Origin: Klebsormidium nitens | Taxonomy: Eukaryota > Plantae > Klebsormidiophyceae | NCBI GenBank assembly: GCA_000708835.1 | Contig: DF237241.1 | Span: forward strand, 45,961 to 109,960 | Direction: 5' to 3' | Length of the DNA: 64,000 nt | Part shown: positions 1,944 through 40,870 of the stretch, piece after piece | Layout of the letters: each line of letters begins with the position of its first letter | Numbering within the stretch: the stretch's first letter is position 1 | Program-made: the position numbers and the translations under genes | The notes under the pieces: model-generated | Seen by the model: the letters and a program-made list of their open reading frames with translations, nothing else | Told to the model about the DNA's origin: nothing | Database searches by the model: none

Positions 1944-2213
1944 CCGTACCGCCAAGGGAATTCGCCACCTTTTGGTGCGAAAAGTCAATTTCGTTCGTTT
2001 TGAGGTTTCACCCGTGTACTTTGAGAGTTTATTTTACATTTCGCACAAAGCATTTTTTCGCTTTCTTTTGCCCCACAAAACAGGACTTTTCACCATTTTG
2101 AGGTAATTCTTTAGTTTCGCCTTTTCGCAGTTAGGGTCCCATTTACATACTTTCTAATTCTTCGCACCGACCCCAAAATATTTATTTTCAGGCGATTTCC
2201 CTTGGCGGTACGG
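1944..2213. mobile_element. MITE (non-autonomous TIR DNA transposon), 270 bp
   Basis: TIRs are CCGTACCGCCAAGGGAATTCGCC (1944-1966) and GGCGATTTCCCTTGGCGGTACGG (2191-2213), 22/23 complementary. The interior is AT-rich and non-coding with repeated TTCGC motifs. TG flanks both ends. Confidence 0.85.
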
Positions 2214-2442
2214 TGCATGTGATCATCATTGATGCGCAGGCCGCCACGCTGGGGACAATTGTGGGCCGCGGAACTTCGCAAAATTGGAAGACAATTTTAA
2301 ACTTTCCAAGATTTTCATGTGGGCTGCGACGTCACTTTGCGAACTTAGGACTAGATTTTGAAAACCACTTTTTGGACCGTCCGAGTGGATGATTGTAGAT
2401 AGTCAGAAGCCAGACTGATTGAACGTCCGAAACCCCACCACA

Positions 2443-2736: not shown

Positions 2737-3304
2737 GGCGGCGCAACAAGAGGCCCCGGTAATTGCCAGGCTCGCCGCCGGTGGCGAACTTTCATTTGGG
2801 ATCGTTTAGAGCAATTTTTGCAACCGTGAATGACCACAATCAGATCTGCCCGGCCGGAGTTAACCGAGAACACTGCTACTACGTCAGCCAGCCGCGCATG
2901 TAGCTGCCAGTACGCCCGCAAGAAATGCCTTGGGCGCTCATGATGTTATGTGCCACCGTCTTGATTCTCAACTTCTACGTACCCTAACCAAAATAGACTT
3001 AAGTTCAACATCTCATTATAGTAGCCGTGCGTTGCAATCCCGACAATATCACATGATCTTACATGCATAAGCTTCAGAGACAGGGCAAGTGGCCATGCAA
3101 GGGTCATTGCAAGTTGAAAACATGCCACGACATGGTTGTTGTTGCTAATCAAAACAACTTTAGGCGTCGTTTCATAAAGGTGCATTTATGTTTGTTGCGG
3201 CAATATCTCCTTTTGGGCTACTACTCTTCAACGTAAGGCTGTTGCTTCGGTAAAGAGGAATCTCATCGAGCTGAATTGCCGGCCTGCCTAGAAAGACGAC
3301 TTTA

Positions 3305-23565: not shown

Positions 23566-26500
23566 ATGGAAAGTGGGGACGGCCCATCGGTGCGCCTACC
23601 AGCACGAGCCACTCGAGGGAAGAGGTCAGCCAAAAAAATGCACAATAGTGAATTGTTTTTCGAAGTAGAGCATATCAGCCAGGTGCCTACTTTCACTTCG
23701 CACATCTTGTGATCTGCGGTTTTGTGATTTTCTTTTATGGAAAGTCTGAAATGCTTGCTGAGTTCTCATGTGGCGGATGCACCTGCTGCAGGCTGAACAA
23801 GCTGATCGAGGAAGAAGACGATGCAGACAAGGCGTTCTGGGGCCAGGATGCATTCAACGAGGTGAGCGGCCTGATCCGTGTCCACTATTGCTGATGATGG
23901 TGGTGTCAATAAAAGGAACAAATATCTGTCACCATCACACTACCACCACCCAGTGGCGCAGATGCCAGGCCGAGGTGTGTAGCCTCCAGTATGGGCTCCA
24001 CTGCGCAGTCTTCATTAGAAGCGATCGACATCTTGAGATGGACCTTTGGCAACATGTTGAACCCCCTGGCAGGTCCCCATGCCCTTCTCTACCAAGGAGG
24101 AAGTGGCTCTAGGTCTGATTGTCCCAGCTACAGGGTCAATTTTGCGCCTTGGATTGGACCTACACACAAACTTGGCGGAGACTTTTTGAGAACATCTTGA
24201 GACACAGTCGTTCAAATCAACCTTGTGGGCAGTTTGGGATCGCCCACTTACTATCAGCTGCGCTCTCTGCCACTACCACCGTTACACCAGGATTTCTTTG
24301 CAGAGAAGGGCCTATTGTTGGAGCTCAGTGACCTTGACTCCGCAGAATTGGTTTAGGATTAAGCAGTCACCAGGCCGAAGCAAGATCTCGAAACTTCATG
24401 CCTGCTTGGGTCAGGGGTGCTTAAGAAGTCAATCATGGATCGATCTCGTTTACTATTGTCTTTCAGGAGGACCAAGAGGAGTACGTCTCTGAGGAGGAAG
24501 AGCAGGACGTGTTCGACAGCGACTTTGATGATGACGTGAGCCCTCAACCCAAGCTGATTTTATGCAAAGCATAGACCTTCACTTTCCAAGCAGCATGCGT
24601 CAATGTGATGTCCTTGCGACGTAAGAAGTGACCTTGCATCGCTGCCTTTGCTAGTCTTGGGAAGCTGAGTTTGAACCGCCTTGTACGCCCTTTCTGGACA
24701 GCTACGTCTGAGATACCACAGTAGTGATTTTGCTTGTAGATTGTTTATTATTTTAGAACTCTTGTCTGATATTTCCTTTTGGATTGCAGGAAGATATGGA
24801 GGACGATGGTGAGGAAGAGGCAGACGAGAGGTAGGCCGCATATTGCACAGCTCTCTCACTCTCTAGAACTTGTTCGATGCAGAAGTAGTGAATCGAAGTC
24901 TCTCCATCCTATCAGGTTTTATCCTCCACCCTCAAGCTGAACCTGACTTTTTCGCCTAACTGTCGCCAGCCATTCTTGCTAAACACGCGCTTCTAACTAT
25001 TTCCATGTCATGTCTAACTTGTCAATTTCCCCCGGTCTTCCTTTCCAGGCCGCAAAGAAAGCGGAAAGCCCCGCCTGGGGCCGCCCCAAAGCGCCCCGCG
25101 CGCAAGGCCGCAACTGCTGCCAAGGCCGCAATCACGCCCAAGACTCAGACCAAGTCCTTTGAAGCCGTGTTCCAAGACAGACTGGACGGAATCAAACCAG
25201 ACAAGAGCACTCCGAAGGCAAAGGCCGCCACGCCAAAGCGCCCCAGGGCAGAGCAGGATTTCGAGTTGGCAGAGGCTGGATTCGAGCGGCGGTCCAAGCG
25301 GGCAGTAGTGGTCGAGAGGAACGTGGAGAGGGAGCAGGAGGAGCGGCAGAGGGCCAAAAGCAGAAAACCGGTGAGGGTCAGAATGGCAATCTGTTCCTTT
25401 TCATTTTTGGGGAAACTCCAGATGTAATGGCCTTCGCAAAGAGCCGCTCACGTATATCAAGTTATCTTCGAGATAGCTTATAGTGAATGCTGCTTGTGCA
25501 AGGGTAACTTTGTGCGAGTCTGTGCTTCCTGACTCCCGCAACGCATTTGGGGACCTGCTGACTTGTTGCTCGGTGGTATCAGACTGTCTGATGAGCGGGC
25601 TGCTGTGGCTCTGCCAGGTGCCGAAAAAGAAGCCGGTGGTGGAGGAGCGGCGGCTGACGCAGGAGGAGATGCTGGCGGAGGCTGCGCAGACAGGCAAGCC
25701 TGGCCGCGCGCTGGACATAGTCTCCACTGGCCTCTTACCTTACTTCCGCTCTTATAGTTCGATTTGCTCACGATCCTATGGTTGGCATCCGAAAGCTGTA
25801 CTTGGATTTTGCTGTGTACTGCACCTGATATTGCGCTGCTGGGGCTTGGGTGTGTAACCGGCTGTGCACGGCATGCGGGGGGGGCTATGCCACTCCATTC
25901 TGGTTGAGACAGCCCGCTTCTGGTCTTGTCCATGCTCGCTGGTACTCTTTGGTTTCTGCTTGTCTCCCGCTGACCGGCTTCACTTAGTCAGAGTCGCTCA
26001 GAATGAAAGAACTGCCTCACTGCCATGTTCGCTGCGGTGTCGACTTGCGAAGAAAGACGCTCTGACTTTGGAGATGGTTACTCCTGACTTTGGAGATGGT
26101 TACTCTCTGCAGAGATTGCGAACCTGCAGTCGCTGGAAATCATGCTGGCGCGCGAGGAGGAGATCAAACGGAAGGCTATCATCCACAAGGAGGCGTTCGC
26201 AGGGCCGCAGATCCGGTACCACTCGAAAGACGGTGAGTGAACTTGATCTAGGAAGACAGAAAAGCTTGCTTGTTTTGTTCGAATACGGATCAAGTTCTTT
26301 GTCAAGGGACTCGTGATCCACATCCTTTGGGTGGTCCTGGGTTGAAAAGGCAATCCCCAAGCAGCGAAGCACCCCCGTGCAGACCTGCCTTCCGGATTGG
26401 GTGCTTTTCAACCTCAACTGCGATTACCTGCCGTTGGTTGGATGAGTATCGCAAGGACCACAAGTTTGTTTTTATCAACTCAACCTTGGTCTGTTCCGTC

Positions 26501-29150
26501 GTCAGGATCTCGCCTGCCTTGCCACCTTGAATTTACCACGGCTGCTACCAGATTTTTTGCCCCGGCGCTTCTTGCAAAGAAATACTGGTCTCGCCAGCCC
26601 TGTCCGCAGGATTTTCCTATCTATCCAGCATAAATCTTGTGTGCACCTCCATAAAAAGCCGGCTACCAAGAAGGGCGGAATAGGTGTTCGCGTGTAAATT
26701 GTGAATTTGCCCCTGAATGGGCCCGCTGTATCTTCCACAGGCTTGCGAAAGAGTATTTACACTTTCTATTTGTGACCAGGATGTGGTGGCTTTTCATTCT
26801 AGGATGTCAAGCCCAGCACGGTCTATGCAGGTCACACCGTGCTCGAGTTCACCCGCATGGACGCCTTTCCTGACGTCATCAATGCGAAAGCGGCCCCCTG
26901 TAAGCCACAGCCGCCGTAGAGCGCTCGAGCTGCGTAGTCGAAAGCTTAACTTTTACGCACACAACTGCGGTCACCTGTGATAACGCACGCGAATCAGAGT
27001 CGTACTTTCTCCATCGCAACATTCCCGCAAGTGCTCTCCTTTTGACATCAGAACTCTCACGAAGAGGTAAACTGACTGTCTGGGTCTCTTTCATTGCCAT
27101 GTTTGTGGGTTCCGATTCGTCCGAAGCCTCCAATCGTAAAGCTGTGCTGAAAGATGGCGCTCTCTTTTTTGTTGCAGATCCCCTAAGGTCGGTCTGCGCC
27201 GTCACGGGTCTGCCCGCCAAGTAAGCCGCCTCGTAAAAGCATTCTGTGTTGTTAGTAGGACGCGCCTAGTGCCGTATCTTACTGCAGCCTCCTTTTCGGA
27301 CGATCGTGCAAAGAGCTAGTAAGCGCGAGAAGATTGTGCCAAGAGCAAGTAAGCGCCATTAGTCAGTTGCAGAGCTTTCGTTTGAGGAACGTTGTCTTGA
27401 AAGGAGGCGCTTCACCTCATCACGGAGACGAGCTTAGCAGGGTCTTCCATTTCGGCTCTGGCTTTTTCTCGTGCGACTCAATACTTTGTAATTGCTCGTA
27501 GGCGTGCACGAAGGGTTTCCTTTTCTGACAGGGCCTCTGCAGAAGGTGAATTGCTGCAGGATGTGACTGAATTCCCTCAACTCTTCTTCCTTTTGCTTTC
27601 TATTGACCGACAAGCTCACCATCGTTCTCTTACTCTCTTTCCCTATGCTTTCCATCGACCGACAAGCCCCCTACTGCGTTCCCGTCTGCAGGTACAAAGA
27701 TCCGCTGACAGGCCTACCGTACGCGACTCTCGAGGCCTTCAAGACGCTGCGCGAAAGGTGAGGGCTGTTCTCGCTGCTGCGGACCTTGCTTGCACACCGA
27801 AAGCGTCGACATTTTCTGGTGAAACCTCCTCTTCTCAGCACCATGACCTTCGTCTGAAAGCGCCGTCTCAAGAAGCGCCCATCGATGGAGAACGTGACGC
27901 CTCGTACGTAGTTGACCTCTCTTTGGACGCAGAATACACGTTTGCCAGCTCATTCTCACGTTCCTCCTGCCGTTCCTGCCGCCATCTCTTACTACGCAAT
28001 ATCCGTTTCCCCTGGGTTGCTGTGCTTGCCCGTTTGCCAACGGTGCAGTACACCGAGCCACCCACTCGGAAGATCTCTCCCGACCCATCCCCCCCTCTCC
28101 TCTGCCCTGGTGGAGCAACCGGCGAGAGCTCCCCCGGTCACTTAGCATCGGAAACGAAGCCGCCCCAAAACCCTCAAACCCGAAACTCTACAAGAAACCA
28201 ACTGCGAACCTCAAGAATCCTTTCCTCTGCTCAGGTGGAGCGACCGCGGCAAGCGCCCCCGGCCCGCCAGCACCGGTGACGAGGCCTCCGGCCGTCGGCG
28301 CGCGAAGCTGGACGCCGTGGACAACGTCAAGCTGTCGAGCGCCGCGCTGGGGCTCAAGCGGGGCCCCCAGAAGAGCGTGCGGGGCCGCCCTTCGCGGCGA
28401 GCTTCGCCCCGGGACGGCGTTTCCCCGGGCACTTCCAGCGCAGAAGAGCGGTCGCTGGGGCCCGCGTCGCCTGCCGATCTGCCCCCCAGCCGCCTGTCGG
28501 TGCAGTCAGGGGCGGAGCAGCCACTCAGTGCGTCGGAGCAGCCTGTTACTGCGGAGCAGCGAGTTAGTGCGTCGGAGCAACACGCGCCGACGGTCGGTTC
28601 TGCGCAAACGTTTTCTGCGTTTGCCGCGGAACAGCCCTTGCCGAGCCTTCAAGACGTCACGCTGGACGACTTTGAGGTTGGCATCGAGACAGCGGCCGGA
28701 GATGAGGAACCCGGGCGATCGAGCGGTCCCGAGGTAGGGAATGCACAAGAACTTCGAGGGGAGAACGCGATCCTTGTTGCTGGAGAAAAGAGTGACCCGG
28801 CGAAGAGGGGTCAGCCGGCAAGTGCGCCCGAGCGGCTTCGAGAAGGCGGAGAAGCCGCAGCTTTGGATGCTGTAGATAGCGTGGTCGGGATAGACGGAGA
28901 AGCCGGTGTCAGACTTGATCCGCAAGGTTTGGGTACGGTTAAGGAGGACGTCACAGGAACGCCTCTATCGACAGCGGCTGCGGCAGTGACTCGGTATCCG
29001 CAAGCTGATGCTGAAGAAACGGGGTGTCCTGTTGGACAGGTGCGGACAGACGGGAGTGGTAGCGCCGCGCCAAATCACGATTCGGACGGAGGGTTGACAA
29101 TACGCACTGCCCCGAATAAACCCGCAATTGATCAAGCCCTCTTGCAGTGA
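23566..29150 (+). CDS. SWC2: SWR1 complex subunit 2 / YL1 / Vps72 homolog with a long C-terminal extension
   Basis: Spliced N-terminus MESGDGPSVRLPARATRGKR|LNKLIEEEDDADKAFWGQDAFNE, followed by DVFDSDFDDD and LTQEEMLAEAAQT|EIANLQSLE. YL1_C motif VCAVTGLPAK|YKDPLTGLPYATLEAFKTLRE. The last exon runs about 28236-29150. One GC-AG intron (25694-26112). Confidence 0.93.
26062..26105. repeat. Perfect 22-nt tandem duplication just upstream of a splice acceptor
   Basis: CTGACTTTGGAGATGGTTACTC occurs twice (26062-26083, 26084-26105), ending 7 nt before the exon start at 26113. Confidence 0.9.
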
Positions 29151-29652
29151 GTTTTGATTGATCGGAGCATGGAAACTTGCAACTGCGTTATGGGTGCTTC
29201 GAGTGCACTGCACAACCGCGCACCAAATGTCTTGCATAAAGAATGTGACATACTTCATTGAATCTGCCTAATCCAGGCCCGCTTCGCATGCTAGATTCGT
29301 GCGAAGTGAGTAAAGATGAGTCTAGCTATAGCTTAGTATAGCTTGATTGTTTGACTTCTGATATCATCATATAACAGCTCGACAATGATGTGAGAGCTTG
29401 CATGTGGAATCACTTTGGAATTTCCAACAGTTTCCGCCAGCAAAACACGATTCAACGCGTCACGCTGACAATCTGCCTCCGTGTCTTACATACTGAGGCA
29501 GTTATATAGGATTATCGTGGACCCGAAACGCGGGTCTCGACCAATCATGCTCATTGGACATTTCCATGTTATGATCTGTGGTGTACGGGTAAGATCTGGT
29601 ACGTAGGTAGTTGTTCATGTTTCAATTGCAGACACCTTCAAACTCAAACGAT

Positions 29653-29709
29653 TGTATGCCATGAGAAGCCTATGGCCGCACTGGCTACGGCGTACGAAAA
29701 GAGACCATC
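29653..29709. repeat. Dispersed short repeat, copy 1
   Basis: TGTATGCCATGAGAAGCCTATGGCCGCACTGGCTACGGCGTACGAAAAGAGACCATC aligns with 53629-53691. Confidence 0.75.
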
Positions 29710-30178
29710 ATGTATGTACCATCATGTGCCAGACATGGTCGACCGAGTGCCATGCACCAGGTTGCGAATTCTTGCGCATCGCAATGATCATGCATACACT
29801 AAGCTATCTAGGAGCTAGCTAGCTCGCACTAACCATTCTGAGTGGGGACAGATCTTAAGTTCAGCGCGTACTGAAGCCTCATGACCTAAGATCGGGTCGA
29901 CTTTTAGACTGATTGAATGTGTCTTCTACCCTAGCATATTGCCTAAATGTGGGCGGCAATGATTTCTCTACAAGTCCCTGCTATCTGCATTTGGCCTCCG
30001 CACAACCAGGTCCCTTCGAGGCCGCCCGCCAGGTGCGGAAGTCAGCTAGCCTAAATATCTCTGGCTTCTCCCATATGCTTTCTGCCTCCCTATTGTGCAC
30101 AGTCAATCATAGACTCCAGCGACGGCTTCGATCCTTTTAGTCTGAACCATTGAGTTGCTATCACCATTTCGATCCGAT

Positions 30179-32468
30179 CTACAAAAAGATCCGCTGGAAC
30201 TTAATTTCTCCCTCCAGGTCGCACTTGCAAACGGGGCATCTCTTTCGCTTCGCCCCCACGATTTTTTGGCAGCATTGCGCGCAGAACTTAGCATGCCCGC
30301 AGTTGCCTCCAATGAGCAAGTGACGGGTCACGGTGTCGCCGTCCCATTCTTCCTGTACACGGCGCACTCGCCAACCTGCGGAAAATAAGGGTGAGGTCAG
30401 ACTGGGGAGAGAAAGGGCGGGGTCAGAATGTGGAGAGAAAAGGCGAGGTCAGACTGCGGAGAGAAAAGGCGAGGTCAGATTGACGGGAAAAGGCAAGAAA
30501 AGTTGATGCGCGTCAAGGCAGCCCATTTGCTGTCAAAAGGGTGGCTCGATGATCGCGTCACGCGCAAGCATGAGTCTAAGCCAGCAGTTCAAGGACTGCT
30601 TTGAAAGCGACCAAGTGAACAGATCTTTGGGCGCTTCGTTTCGACGAGATCCAGGTGCTCTTGGGTAACGCTTGCGCGGAACAGGTAGGCTCTTACAGAC
30701 GGACAGACGCAGTGACTCAGTTCCCGAGGCTCGGGACTCCTTGACTTTGGTGTACAAAGTACCAAGGGGCTGTCGACCTGTTCTCTCAGCATAGGAGTGA
30801 TTCCATGCGACGGGGCAATTTTGCGGGCCCTGATTTTAGCTGGCGCGGATCTTTTCAACTGGGGCGCACTCGCACGCCAGCAGTGCGAACAACGGTTTTC
30901 CAACGCCCGGTTTTCCCATCTCAACTGTCGCTGTTTGTTGGAAATGCTCAAAGCGGACCACGAAGTGTGACACCCGTGCTTCTTACCTCCTGCAGCTCTT
31001 CGTGGAGGCGCTTCATCGCGCGCTCGAGGTTCGCTCCAGCTTCGAGCGTGCGCGCGAGTTCCTTGCGCAAAAGAACCGCCTGCAAAGATGGTTGCTGTTT
31101 GACTTAGCTCCCACCTCCTTTCCGGGCTCTTGAAGTTCCTTGCTGGCATCCCCTCGTGGAGCCTAAGAAAAAATTATTTTGCTTTTATCATCAGCTTCGG
31201 AAATACCGGCTTTAACGACCTTCCACGGCTATCCTTTTGTCATTCGCTCCGGCTAAATGAGTTTGAAGTGCTCGTAACGCATGTTCCGCGCCTTATCGTC
31301 CTACCCTTGCACCGTGTCCAGAATCTCAAAGGTTCGCAAGCGCCCACATAGAAACAACACTTCTGTTCGCCATCGAACAAAAACCGCACCCTCACCTCCC
31401 GCTCGTGCTTTGCCTTCGCCTCTTCCGCCGCGGCCCGAATCGCGTCCATTTCTTTCCTAAGCGCCTCCTTCTCCAGTTCGAGGCCCTTCTTCTCACCCTC
31501 AAGCATAGAGACCGTTTCTTTCGTTGCGCGCAGCGCGCACCCCGCCTTGGCGTTGCTCAGCTTGACTGCCTTCACCTCTTCCCTCTCCTCCGCCAAACGC
31601 TCCAGCACCGCTTTGAGCGTCTCCTCTCGCCAGCGTGCCACCTTCGCGCCCGGGTCGAGCGCGCGCATATCCTCCACCGTCGCGAGTTAGCAGAACACGC
31701 GCGCACACTCGTTCGCCTCAAGCGCGCACGCGCGCACGGCGCACGCGCGCTCCCAGGCGGCGCGCCCCGCGCCCCGCTGCTCTTGGCGCGCCGCGAGGTG
31801 CTGCGCCGACAGCAGCCCGCTCTCGTTCTCATCGAAGAAGACCAGCGCGGTTTGCCTGTAGCCCCTTGGATCCCACACAGCTTTCACGCGCCTGACCGGG
31901 TATCCCTTCGCCTGGAGAGACTCCCCGAGCACGTTCTCCAAGCCAATGCTCCGCTCATGGTCTCTCCCCCGATTGTGCCCGGGGCGCAAGCTTTGGGCGA
32001 CCACGATGGGCGGCTTGACAATGCTTCCTGGGTCAGCGATCTCCACTCTGAACTCTCTACTTGCCGTCTCTTCCCGGTCCGCAGAAATGAGTGTCTTTTG
32101 CGACTCTGCAATGGCGCGCGCGTAGCCCTCATGTGCCTTCTTTCGCGCTTCGACTCGTGTCACGTCGTTCGCATGCTGGAGCAGCGCCGCCAGGCTTGGG
32201 AAGCCGCGGTATGATCCGGCGCCAGACACGCAGACTGGGCACCGGAATGACGAGCCACCCGGTTTTGCGTGCCCGGTTCGTTGGGCCCGCTCTAGTTCCA
32301 ATTCCCGGGTCCAGTGTCCGTACCATGAGCCGCCCCAAGCGGCGTCCTCTTCCGAGCCGTCGGACTCTGAACAGCTTGGAAAGTCGAAAACGGAACGAGC
32401 GCTGGGGATCCCTTGTTCGCCTCCGGGAACTCTGGCGAGGGGGCCGAACCGAACGGCTCTGGCTGCAT
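30179..32468 (-). pseudogene. zf-XS / XS domain - coiled coil - C3HC4 RING gene (SGS3/IDN2-related N-terminus) with inactivating lesions
   Basis: zf-XS-like FRCPVC...SLAALLQHA...AHEGYARAI, then XS-like IVKPPIVV...VKAVWDPRGYRQTALVFFDENESGLLSA. There is an in-frame TAA at 31687-31689 (RVFC*LATVEDM), followed by coiled coil. Exons end at 31396 and span 31079-30987 and 30375-30179. The RING (ECAV/QEEW...CGHAKFCAQC...CPVC) is split by a 1-nt frameshift near 30356. The nearest ATG (32468) is out of frame. Confidence 0.8.
30393..30494 (-). repeat. 26-nt tandem repeat (about 4 copies) of a branch point/polypyrimidine/3' splice-site module
   Basis: Units GAGGTCAGACTGCGGAGAGAAAAGGC start at 30393, 30419, 30445 and 30471. 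On the minus strand they read (G)CCTTTTCTCTCCGCAG-TCTGACCTC. Confidence 0.85.
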
Positions 32469-33571
32469 GCTGACGTCAATCCGCACACAGAGGGCTGCTT
32501 GCTTTGAACTTGGATGGTGGACAGCTGTCCAGAGCTCTTGAATCAGCGCCGCATCTTTCAAATCAGTGGGTAATGAAATCCGCGTCTTCTCGGCGCCACA
32601 ACCTTTGTGACCGTGTCCAATGGCTGGAAGGGTGCATTCCCTTGCCCGGATCTTTTTTCTTGGAGGAATCACCATCCACGGCAAAACAAAGTGTCCTTCT
32701 GTCAGAGCGGCACGGTCATTCAGATCTAAAAGCGGCAAGTAACACTCGCTTCTCTTTCTCTGACTTCGCTGCGTGATGTGCCTGCGGCCTAGCCTGGAAA
32801 GCATGTTCGTGCCTCGCACACGGAACTGTTTGCCACTTCCACCAAACAGAGTTCACTCGCAGTACTGCAGACAGCCAGCACGAGATTCGACTTGTAGGTC
32901 GATTGCAACCTCAATCTCGAAGCGCATCGGTTGGAGGTGTCAACATGCATGAGCGCGGGGCGCAGATCGTTCGCGGCGACTGTTGCGCTTAATGTTGCGT
33001 GGCCCGACAGCATCAAGAACGTGACCGTGTCGCTGAGAAGATGTGGCACAGGTCGTTGAAATCCTGCAGACATAACGGGCTTCACAGGTTCAGTCATCGG
33101 TTGAACTGCATGTGAGTCCGGTGTGCCATGCTGAATGCAAGACGGCAGCTGAGAAGACTGAGCTGGTTACATCGAGCCCAGATGATGTTGGGTCAAGCGT
33201 TACGGATTTCCGTGTTAAGTGCGTTAACAGGCTCAGCCGGGACCTGCTTTGACGTTGAAGTCACGATATGGGGGCCGCGCGTGACTGGGTGGCCCCTGGA
33301 GGTGGCCCCGGGCCGCGAGCTCGTGATCCGCGGCCGCCGTCCGCGACGGAAACCACCGCGCGCGGCACTGCACCGACGCGCGGCCGCACCTTCGTAGAGT
33401 ACGCGGCCGCTTTGTCAGGAGGACGTTTCTAGAAAGATCTGATCCTGATGGAAAATGGTGGTGTGGGCAGGTGTAAAAGTGCGTACCATCCTGAGCTGAA
33501 GAGCTACAGCAGAAGCGCTCAGTGGTGGTAAAAGGGCTGCAGGACACACTAGATTGTACGGGTCCGGCACG

Positions 33572-40870
<7,299 letters not shown>

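Follow-up and report, generated by a model that had tools for sequence, protein, structure and literature searches.

The genome of the alga Klebsormidium nitens carries, on the minus strand of a 64,000-nt stretch (NIES-2285, GCA_000708835.1, DF237241.1; hereafter the window, in which coordinates are given), a locus of three exons that encode a zf-XS-like finger, an XS domain, a coiled coil and a C3HC4-type RING. Set against intact relatives, this XS-RING locus bears several lesions, which bear out the original prediction for the stretch, namely an inactivated XS, coiled-coil and RING gene. We conclude that the locus is very probably a pseudogene, a decayed and anciently diverged paralogue of the zf-XS-like, XS, coiled-coil and RING gene GAQ79151.1. 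The sequences compared include that gene, carried on sequence L002, and its counterpart in a 63-kb metagenomic contig of a related alga, L003. Domain and homology searches were run exon by exon, and the stop codon and the RING break were bridged by X within single exons. The features are listed below, a slash marking an exon boundary.

32395..32804, minus strand: former N-terminal coding region, out of frame with the XS part, with the annotated start ATG (32804-32802)
32729-32718, minus strand: LDLN motif, in the 5' frame
32477-32463, minus strand: DVSMQ motif, in the 5' frame
32394..32427, minus strand: frame-change zone (presumed 1-nt indel), its position inferred and not exact
32110..32244, minus strand: zf-XS-like zinc finger, C-x2-C ... 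H ... H, by alignment to SGS3-like zf-XS and GAQ79151.1
31747..32022, minus strand: XS domain, part before the stop (PF03468)
31863-31852, minus strand: GYRQ in place of GH.G, by alignment with 14 relatives
31687..31689, minus strand: in-frame TAA replacing the Tyr codon of the FCYLA or YGYLA strand of XS, by codon alignment
31396..31686, minus strand: end of XS and first coiled-coil segment, to the exon-1 donor GAG/GTGAGG, by homology to GAQ79151.1
31080..31395, minus strand: intron 1, GT...AG, read directly; junction HERE/AVLL in the KFL_002920130 product
30987..31079, minus strand: exon 2, 31 codons of coiled coil, both ends in phase 0, in the KFL_002920130 model
30376..30986, minus strand: intron 2, GT...AG; junction LQE/VGEC in the KFL_002920130 product
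30179..30375, minus strand: RING exon, zf-C3HC4_3 type, with its TAG end at 30181-30179, by Pfam and alignment with the L002 and L003 RING exons
30353..30357, minus strand: RING lesion, TACAG, by codon alignment

Both predicted GT-AG introns are intact, and they are the introns of a public 83-aa gene model (31395-31080 and 30986-30376). The splice sites read GAG/GTGAGG (31396/31395) and TTTGCAG/G (31080/31079) for the first intron, and GAG/GTAAGA (30987/30986) and CCGCAG/G (30376/30375) for the second. The acceptor of the RING exon falls two codons ahead of E-C, as it does in the relatives. Exon 2 is in frame with exon 1 and has no clear counterpart among exons 2-4 of GAQ79151.1.

Each predicted domain can be traced, though some only in part. 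The XS domain matches Pfam PF03468 (E 2.1e-8, frame 31690-32301, minus strand) with 34.9 bits against a gathering cut-off of 25; the stop truncates the match, which runs over profile positions 4-91 of 113, and leaves no complete domain in one open frame. The second half of the RING matches zf-C3HC4_3 (PF13920; profile 19-46 of 49, frame 30182-30367, minus strand) at E 1.3e-5 and 25.3 bits, just below the 27-bit cut-off. This C3-H4-C5-C6-C7-C8 half is recognisable and aligns with three intact relatives, while three-frame translation places the region of the first Cys pair (VGECAV) at the exon start in another frame. The C-terminal C3HC4 RING is thus present in split form: its eight zinc ligands share no single frame, with C1 in the entry frame, C2 changed to TAC and C3-C8 one base off. 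Pfam zf-XS (PF03470) gave no match at E<=1 in the XS-RING locus, and none in GAQ79151.1 either. The Cys pair and both His of the finger align with the zf-XS of SGS3-like proteins, the Cys, the His and a YARA motif being invariant, and the cautious wording "zf-XS-like" was fair. The coiled coil, although homologous to that of the intact paralogue, matches coiled-coil families only below threshold. Pfam found no XH domain in any exon of the locus. The long open frames are not chance; the 262-codon XS frame was open in 18 of 2000 dinucleotide shuffles, and a 186-codon stop-free 5' frame (32852-32295) in 36 of 5000.

The prediction that an intact paralogue might exist is borne out by GAQ79151.1. 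An exhaustive HMMER search of 1.84 billion representatives returned just 23 matches. Nearest among them were GAQ79151.1 itself (P0002), a 716-aa K. nitens "XS domain-containing protein" at 46% identity, together with P0003 from a Joint Genome Institute (JGI) metagenome, P0004 from a Logan contig, and KFL_000250270 (P0007); most of the others are zf-XS/XS proteins of the SGS3-like type, from land plants and Coleochaete, and have no RING. The GAQ79151.1 gene (L002 10001-14501) runs through five exons in a single frame from XS to RING, with XS at residues 283-405 and a RING-like end of the form C-x2-C ... C-x-H-x3-C-x2-C ... C-x4-C. Its five exons recur in the same order on L003, with the same major facilitator superfamily (MFS) gene upstream. 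There is, then, an intact XS-to-RING gene, and it has been conserved from one species to another.

The window copy belongs to this family of XS, coiled-coil and RING proteins, since homology is collinear over all domains and intron positions are shared. With GAQ79151.1 and its metagenomic orthologues P0003 and P0026 (L003) it has in common the LDLN and DVSMQ motifs, the zf-XS-like finger, XS, the coiled coil and a zf-C3HC4_3-type RING with EEW; with GAQ79151.1 it also shares the position of the intron after exon 1 and that of the RING-exon acceptor. The two differ in that GAQ79151.1 is intact and has five exons, three of them coiled-coil exons against one in the window copy, and in the last RING Cys pair, which is C-x4-C in GAQ79151.1 and CPVC in the window copy. 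The window copy alone has a nonsense codon and two frame changes and has lost Cys2 and GH.G.

At the stop, the window reads TGC TAA CTC where L002 and L003 read TGT TAC CTC/TTG, a single C-to-A change that puts the predicted TAA exactly at the aromatic position of XS, a Tyr in both relatives. A structure model of the GAQ79151.1 XS domain (predicted local distance difference test, pLDDT, 86; predicted template modelling score, pTM, 0.82) sets this Tyr in beta-strand 117-121. The best match of the model in the PDB is 4E8U, the XS domain of IDN2 (E 8e-7, template modelling score 0.62-0.68), followed by RNA-recognition motif (RRM) domains. Because the Tyr lies within a core XS strand of the model, the stop removes half of that strand, one helix and one further strand. 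Beyond the stop, homology to GAQ79151.1 stays as high as before it (45% over 330 aa in total) and ends where exon 1 of GAQ79151.1 ends, at residue 495. Farther upstream, a 15-sequence alignment shows the His and Gly of GH.G in every one of 14 relatives and GYRQ in the window copy.

The RING lesion is more complex than the predicted 1-nt frameshift. Three intact relatives begin the RING with TGC-NNN-GAG-GAG-TGG, and the window has TAC-AG-GAA-GAA-TGG, so that five bases (TACAG) stand for six (TGC plus NNN), the second zinc-binding Cys is gone and the frame is shifted; the entry frame of the exon then reaches a TGA at 30330-30328. A base is indeed missing, but the single-lesion account fails in that the Cys2 codon itself reads TAC. 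Since no single inserted base restores a Cys codon, the lesion comprises two changes, the loss of a ligand and the missing base.

Two ways of reading past the TAA were considered and rejected. A 27-nt GT...AG stretch around it, which contains CTAAC, would delete a conserved strand if spliced as an intron and is far shorter than the other introns of the gene. A non-standard genetic code disagrees with the standard stops of the neighbouring annotated genes and the paralogues, and with the ordinary TAC that stands in the relatives at the position of the TAA.

A working protein might in principle still arise if the TAA were read through and an alternative acceptor, TACAG/GAAGAA (30353/30352), were used: through the AG at 30354-30353, exon 2 would continue in frame into EEWDGD... 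as far as the TAG. We give this bypass almost no credence. Its product would have neither Cys1 nor Cys2 of the RING, so that one zinc site could not form; nothing points to programmed readthrough; the relatives conserve the canonical acceptor position; and the frame change at the 5' end would persist.

That 5' frame change goes beyond what had been described. The start ATG at 32468-32466 had been called out of frame, which holds for the XS frame; the same ATG, however, is in frame with the annotated start at 32804, in the 186-codon stop-free frame. Within this frame, LDLN and DVSMQ are collinear with GAQ79151.1 residues 33-36 and 136-140, and the two motifs occur in the same order in GAQ79151.1, P0026 and KFL_000250270. 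BLASTP of the 5' region against GAQ79151.1 is weak by itself (E 0.4). Homology to GAQ79151.1 follows one frame to about 32427 and another from about 32394, and the zone of change contains a GGG run (32412-32410) and a CCCC run (32407-32404). We infer from these comparisons an additional frame change at about 32427-32394, within what would once have been a continuous first exon. The Augustus gene model evades it by a predicted intron, 32765-32463, that joins ...HITQR to TRAVRF....

GenBank splits this one pseudogene into two hypothetical genes, each of which terminates at one lesion. The best protein match of the XS frame is the 271-aa hypothetical protein KFL_002920135 (P0001) of K. nitens, 100% identical, which starts at 32804 and ends at the TAA; its contig, DF237241.1, agrees with window positions 25687-38804 at every base. 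The second model, KFL_002920130 (P0027), is an 83-aa product that reads ...HERE/AVLL...LQE/VGECAVYRKNGTATP and ends at the TGA created by the frameshift. Taken at face value, this public Augustus annotation describes two real genes, an XS-only protein and a coiled-coil peptide that might, for example, modulate an intact XS-RING protein, and a GT-AG intron linking ATG 32804 to the XS frame can be drawn. We consider two real genes very doubtful. The 271-aa product breaks off midway through a core beta-strand, is short of about 22 of the 113 XS profile positions and has lost GH.G, and the 83-aa product ends in nine out-of-frame residues inside the RING exon, the rest of which is still RING in another frame. 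Moreover, homology to one continuous protein spans both models, and neither protein has other cluster members or sources beyond the K. nitens genome. A word search with the piece after the stop found no transcript-derived protein and matched only the annotated 83-aa protein; GAQ79151.1 likewise has no transcript-derived entries, so their lack for the broken copy says nothing about expression. The public annotation can thus be corrected, the two hypothetical proteins being pieces of a single pseudogene.

Several points weigh against the pseudogene reading. The lesions are known from one assembly only, and each of the two frame changes is at or next to short homopolymers (GGG/CCCC at 32412-32404; GG at 30353-30352), which a 454-based assembly can miscount. 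Apart from the lesions the frames are long and open, and no orthologue with which to gauge relaxed constraint, through the ratio of nonsynonymous to synonymous substitution rates (dN/dS), was found in other species. The single source, the use of 454 reads and the homopolymers also favour an assembly artefact, in which the gene is intact in the organism and its stop and frame changes are errors of the 454/Illumina Newbler assembly. That assembly, published in 2014, combined 454 and Illumina reads (5.4 Gb for 104 Mb) in Newbler, with genes called by Augustus (PMC4052687).

We nevertheless judge an artefact highly improbable. Errors of the indel type cannot turn TAC into TAA, TGC into TAC or GH.G into GYRQ, and restoring one base at 30353-30357 still leaves a Tyr at Cys2. 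It is very unlikely that substitution errors entered the consensus at two codons critical for function, and four or five independent errors within 2.6 kb at about 50x are very improbable. Assembly error could account for the two indels but hardly for the substitutions.

On the pseudogene reading, the ancestral gene would have encoded a protein of about 570 aa in three exons. This protein may have bound RNA through XS, with an RRM-like fold as in IDN2 and SGS3, associated with itself through the coiled coil and recruited a ubiquitin-conjugating enzyme (E2) through the C-terminal RING. In the present copy a C-to-A change has made a TAA of the Tyr codon in the core XS strand; the second RING Cys codon and an adjoining base have been lost, the 5' part reads in a different frame and GH.G has disappeared. 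This copy cannot make an XS-to-RING protein. Any transcript would at best yield a truncated XS fragment, probably unfolded.

The copy itself is old. In a maximum-likelihood tree it is sister to (P0002,(P0003,P0026)), within a Klebsormidium clade that has support 100/99 and lies outside the SGS3-like group. Its branch measures 0.72 against 0.38-0.53 for the other members of the clade. The window copy is thus a paralogue of long standing and did not arise by recent duplication. Its decay is slight: about 570 codons contain a single nonsense codon and two frame changes. That a paralogue this old (45% identical) carries so few lesions makes it probable that selection maintained it for most of its past and that inactivation came late. 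The original prediction of recent inactivation is accordingly plausible.

Relatives of the window copy are few. No orthologue of it turned up in other species by word search with the XS piece, which matched just the protein annotated at the locus itself, by the exhaustive HMMER search or in metagenome scans; a word search with GAQ79151.1 returned Klebsormidium-type orthologues only, and Atlas look-ups found no XS+RING cluster with 50 or more members.

KFL_000250270, annotated as a 247-aa protein on L002 (8475-9244, minus strand), is another decayed member of the family. It duplicates part of the GAQ79151.1 gene, the first ~320 codons, in inverted orientation, lies head-to-head with it and is 42-45% identical; stops interrupt its frame, about 50 residues are missing, and the frame changes immediately ahead of the PPIVIAQNLR strand of XS. 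Because this second decayed copy adjoins GAQ79151.1, decay in the family is recurrent. L003 has a further RING exon of the same type, also intact (2048-2242, minus strand), which is 71% identical to the one that ends the XS gene there; it lies about 5.7 kb upstream of that gene on the other strand, with a coiled-coil open reading frame at 3035-3295 and no adjoining XS exon. On the Logan contig (L004, SRR14092360), a GAQ79151.1-type XS exon at about 2380-2580 shifts frame inside XS, with high-scoring segment pairs in frames 1 and 3, and the protein called from it, P0004, is therefore out of frame after about residue 310; the shift is either a contig error or a further broken copy in another strain.

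Intact members of the family begin ELDLN(I/L)(A/S)P (GAQ79151.1 residues 32-38, and the N-termini of P0026 and P0004), and the pseudogene keeps LLDLND. As a sequence match, ELDLN(I/L)(A/S)P fits the EAR-type repression motifs LxLxL and DLNxxP, which are known from plant transcriptional repressors.

Two better-known groups of XS proteins resemble the locus. SGS3 and SGS3-like proteins of land plants and charophytes likewise have a zf-XS-type finger, XS and then a coiled coil, and match it in sequence at E 1e-4 to 1e-12. They have no RING, whereas the window locus has a RING exon, and they carry W-PP-MV and YGY/W where the Klebsormidium clade has K-PP-IV and FCY. With its RING exon and its place in a separate Klebsormidium clade, the window copy is not an SGS3 orthologue. 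The IDN2/FDM proteins of RNA-directed DNA methylation share the XS fold, as seen in the match of the paralogue model to 4E8U, and the order of XS then coiled coil; they end in XH where the window locus has its RING.

The combination of XS and RING, which had been put forward as a novel architecture, is not new. GAQ79151.1 is already in GenBank and UniProt, and orthologues of it occur on L003. In addition, the Selaginella moellendorffii protein XP_002979112 was described in 2018 as an XS protein with a C-terminal RING instead of zf-XS (PMC5907777); by that description, on which the comparison is based, it resembles the window locus in having XS and a C-terminal RING. Our literature search found no paper that treats XS-RING proteins as a family or tests any member.

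The pseudogene is flanked by two genes on the plus strand. A Cpn60/TCP-1 chaperonin subunit gene (33572-38804) is divergent from its 5' end, and a YL1-domain gene (25687-29150) is convergent with its 3' end; these flanks are anchors with which to locate the orthologous locus in other Klebsormidium genomes. Two repeats lie within the locus. In intron 2, a 26-nt tandem repeat (30393-30479; 3.3 copies, 88% matches) stands directly before the RING-exon acceptor, and its units, pyrimidine-rich on the gene strand and mostly ending in CAG, place several acceptor-like sites ahead of 30376/30375. In the XS exon just upstream of the TAA, a GC-rich 23-nt repeat (31696-31750; 2.4 copies) with an imperfect (GC)n run encodes a variable ACAVRACALEA linker. 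No second copy of any exon of the XS-RING locus and no tRNA or Rfam family was found in the window.

For the locus itself little is at stake, and the gene worth studying is the intact paralogue GAQ79151.1 rather than the broken copy. Its domains suggest that intact family members likely bind RNA through XS, oligomerise through the coiled coil and recruit an E2 through the RING; the domains are present in the sequence, and the activity is predicted from them. A role as an antiviral or silencing-linked ubiquitin ligase (E3) that recognises double-stranded RNA may be entertained for the family only and cannot apply to the broken copy. Turnover within the family is evident from its dead copies. 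It is conceivable, if unlikely, that XS, coiled-coil and RING proteins are RNA-guided ubiquitin ligases of early streptophytes that undergo rapid birth and death like immune-type genes. If so, K. nitens would hold one working copy (GAQ79151.1), an old paralogue killed recently and the decayed, inverted KFL_000250270, and the LDLN or DLNxxP motif at the N-terminus of intact members would also connect the family with transcriptional co-repressors. An XS RNA-binding module joined to a RING could tie RNA recognition to ubiquitination in a lineage near the origin of land plants.

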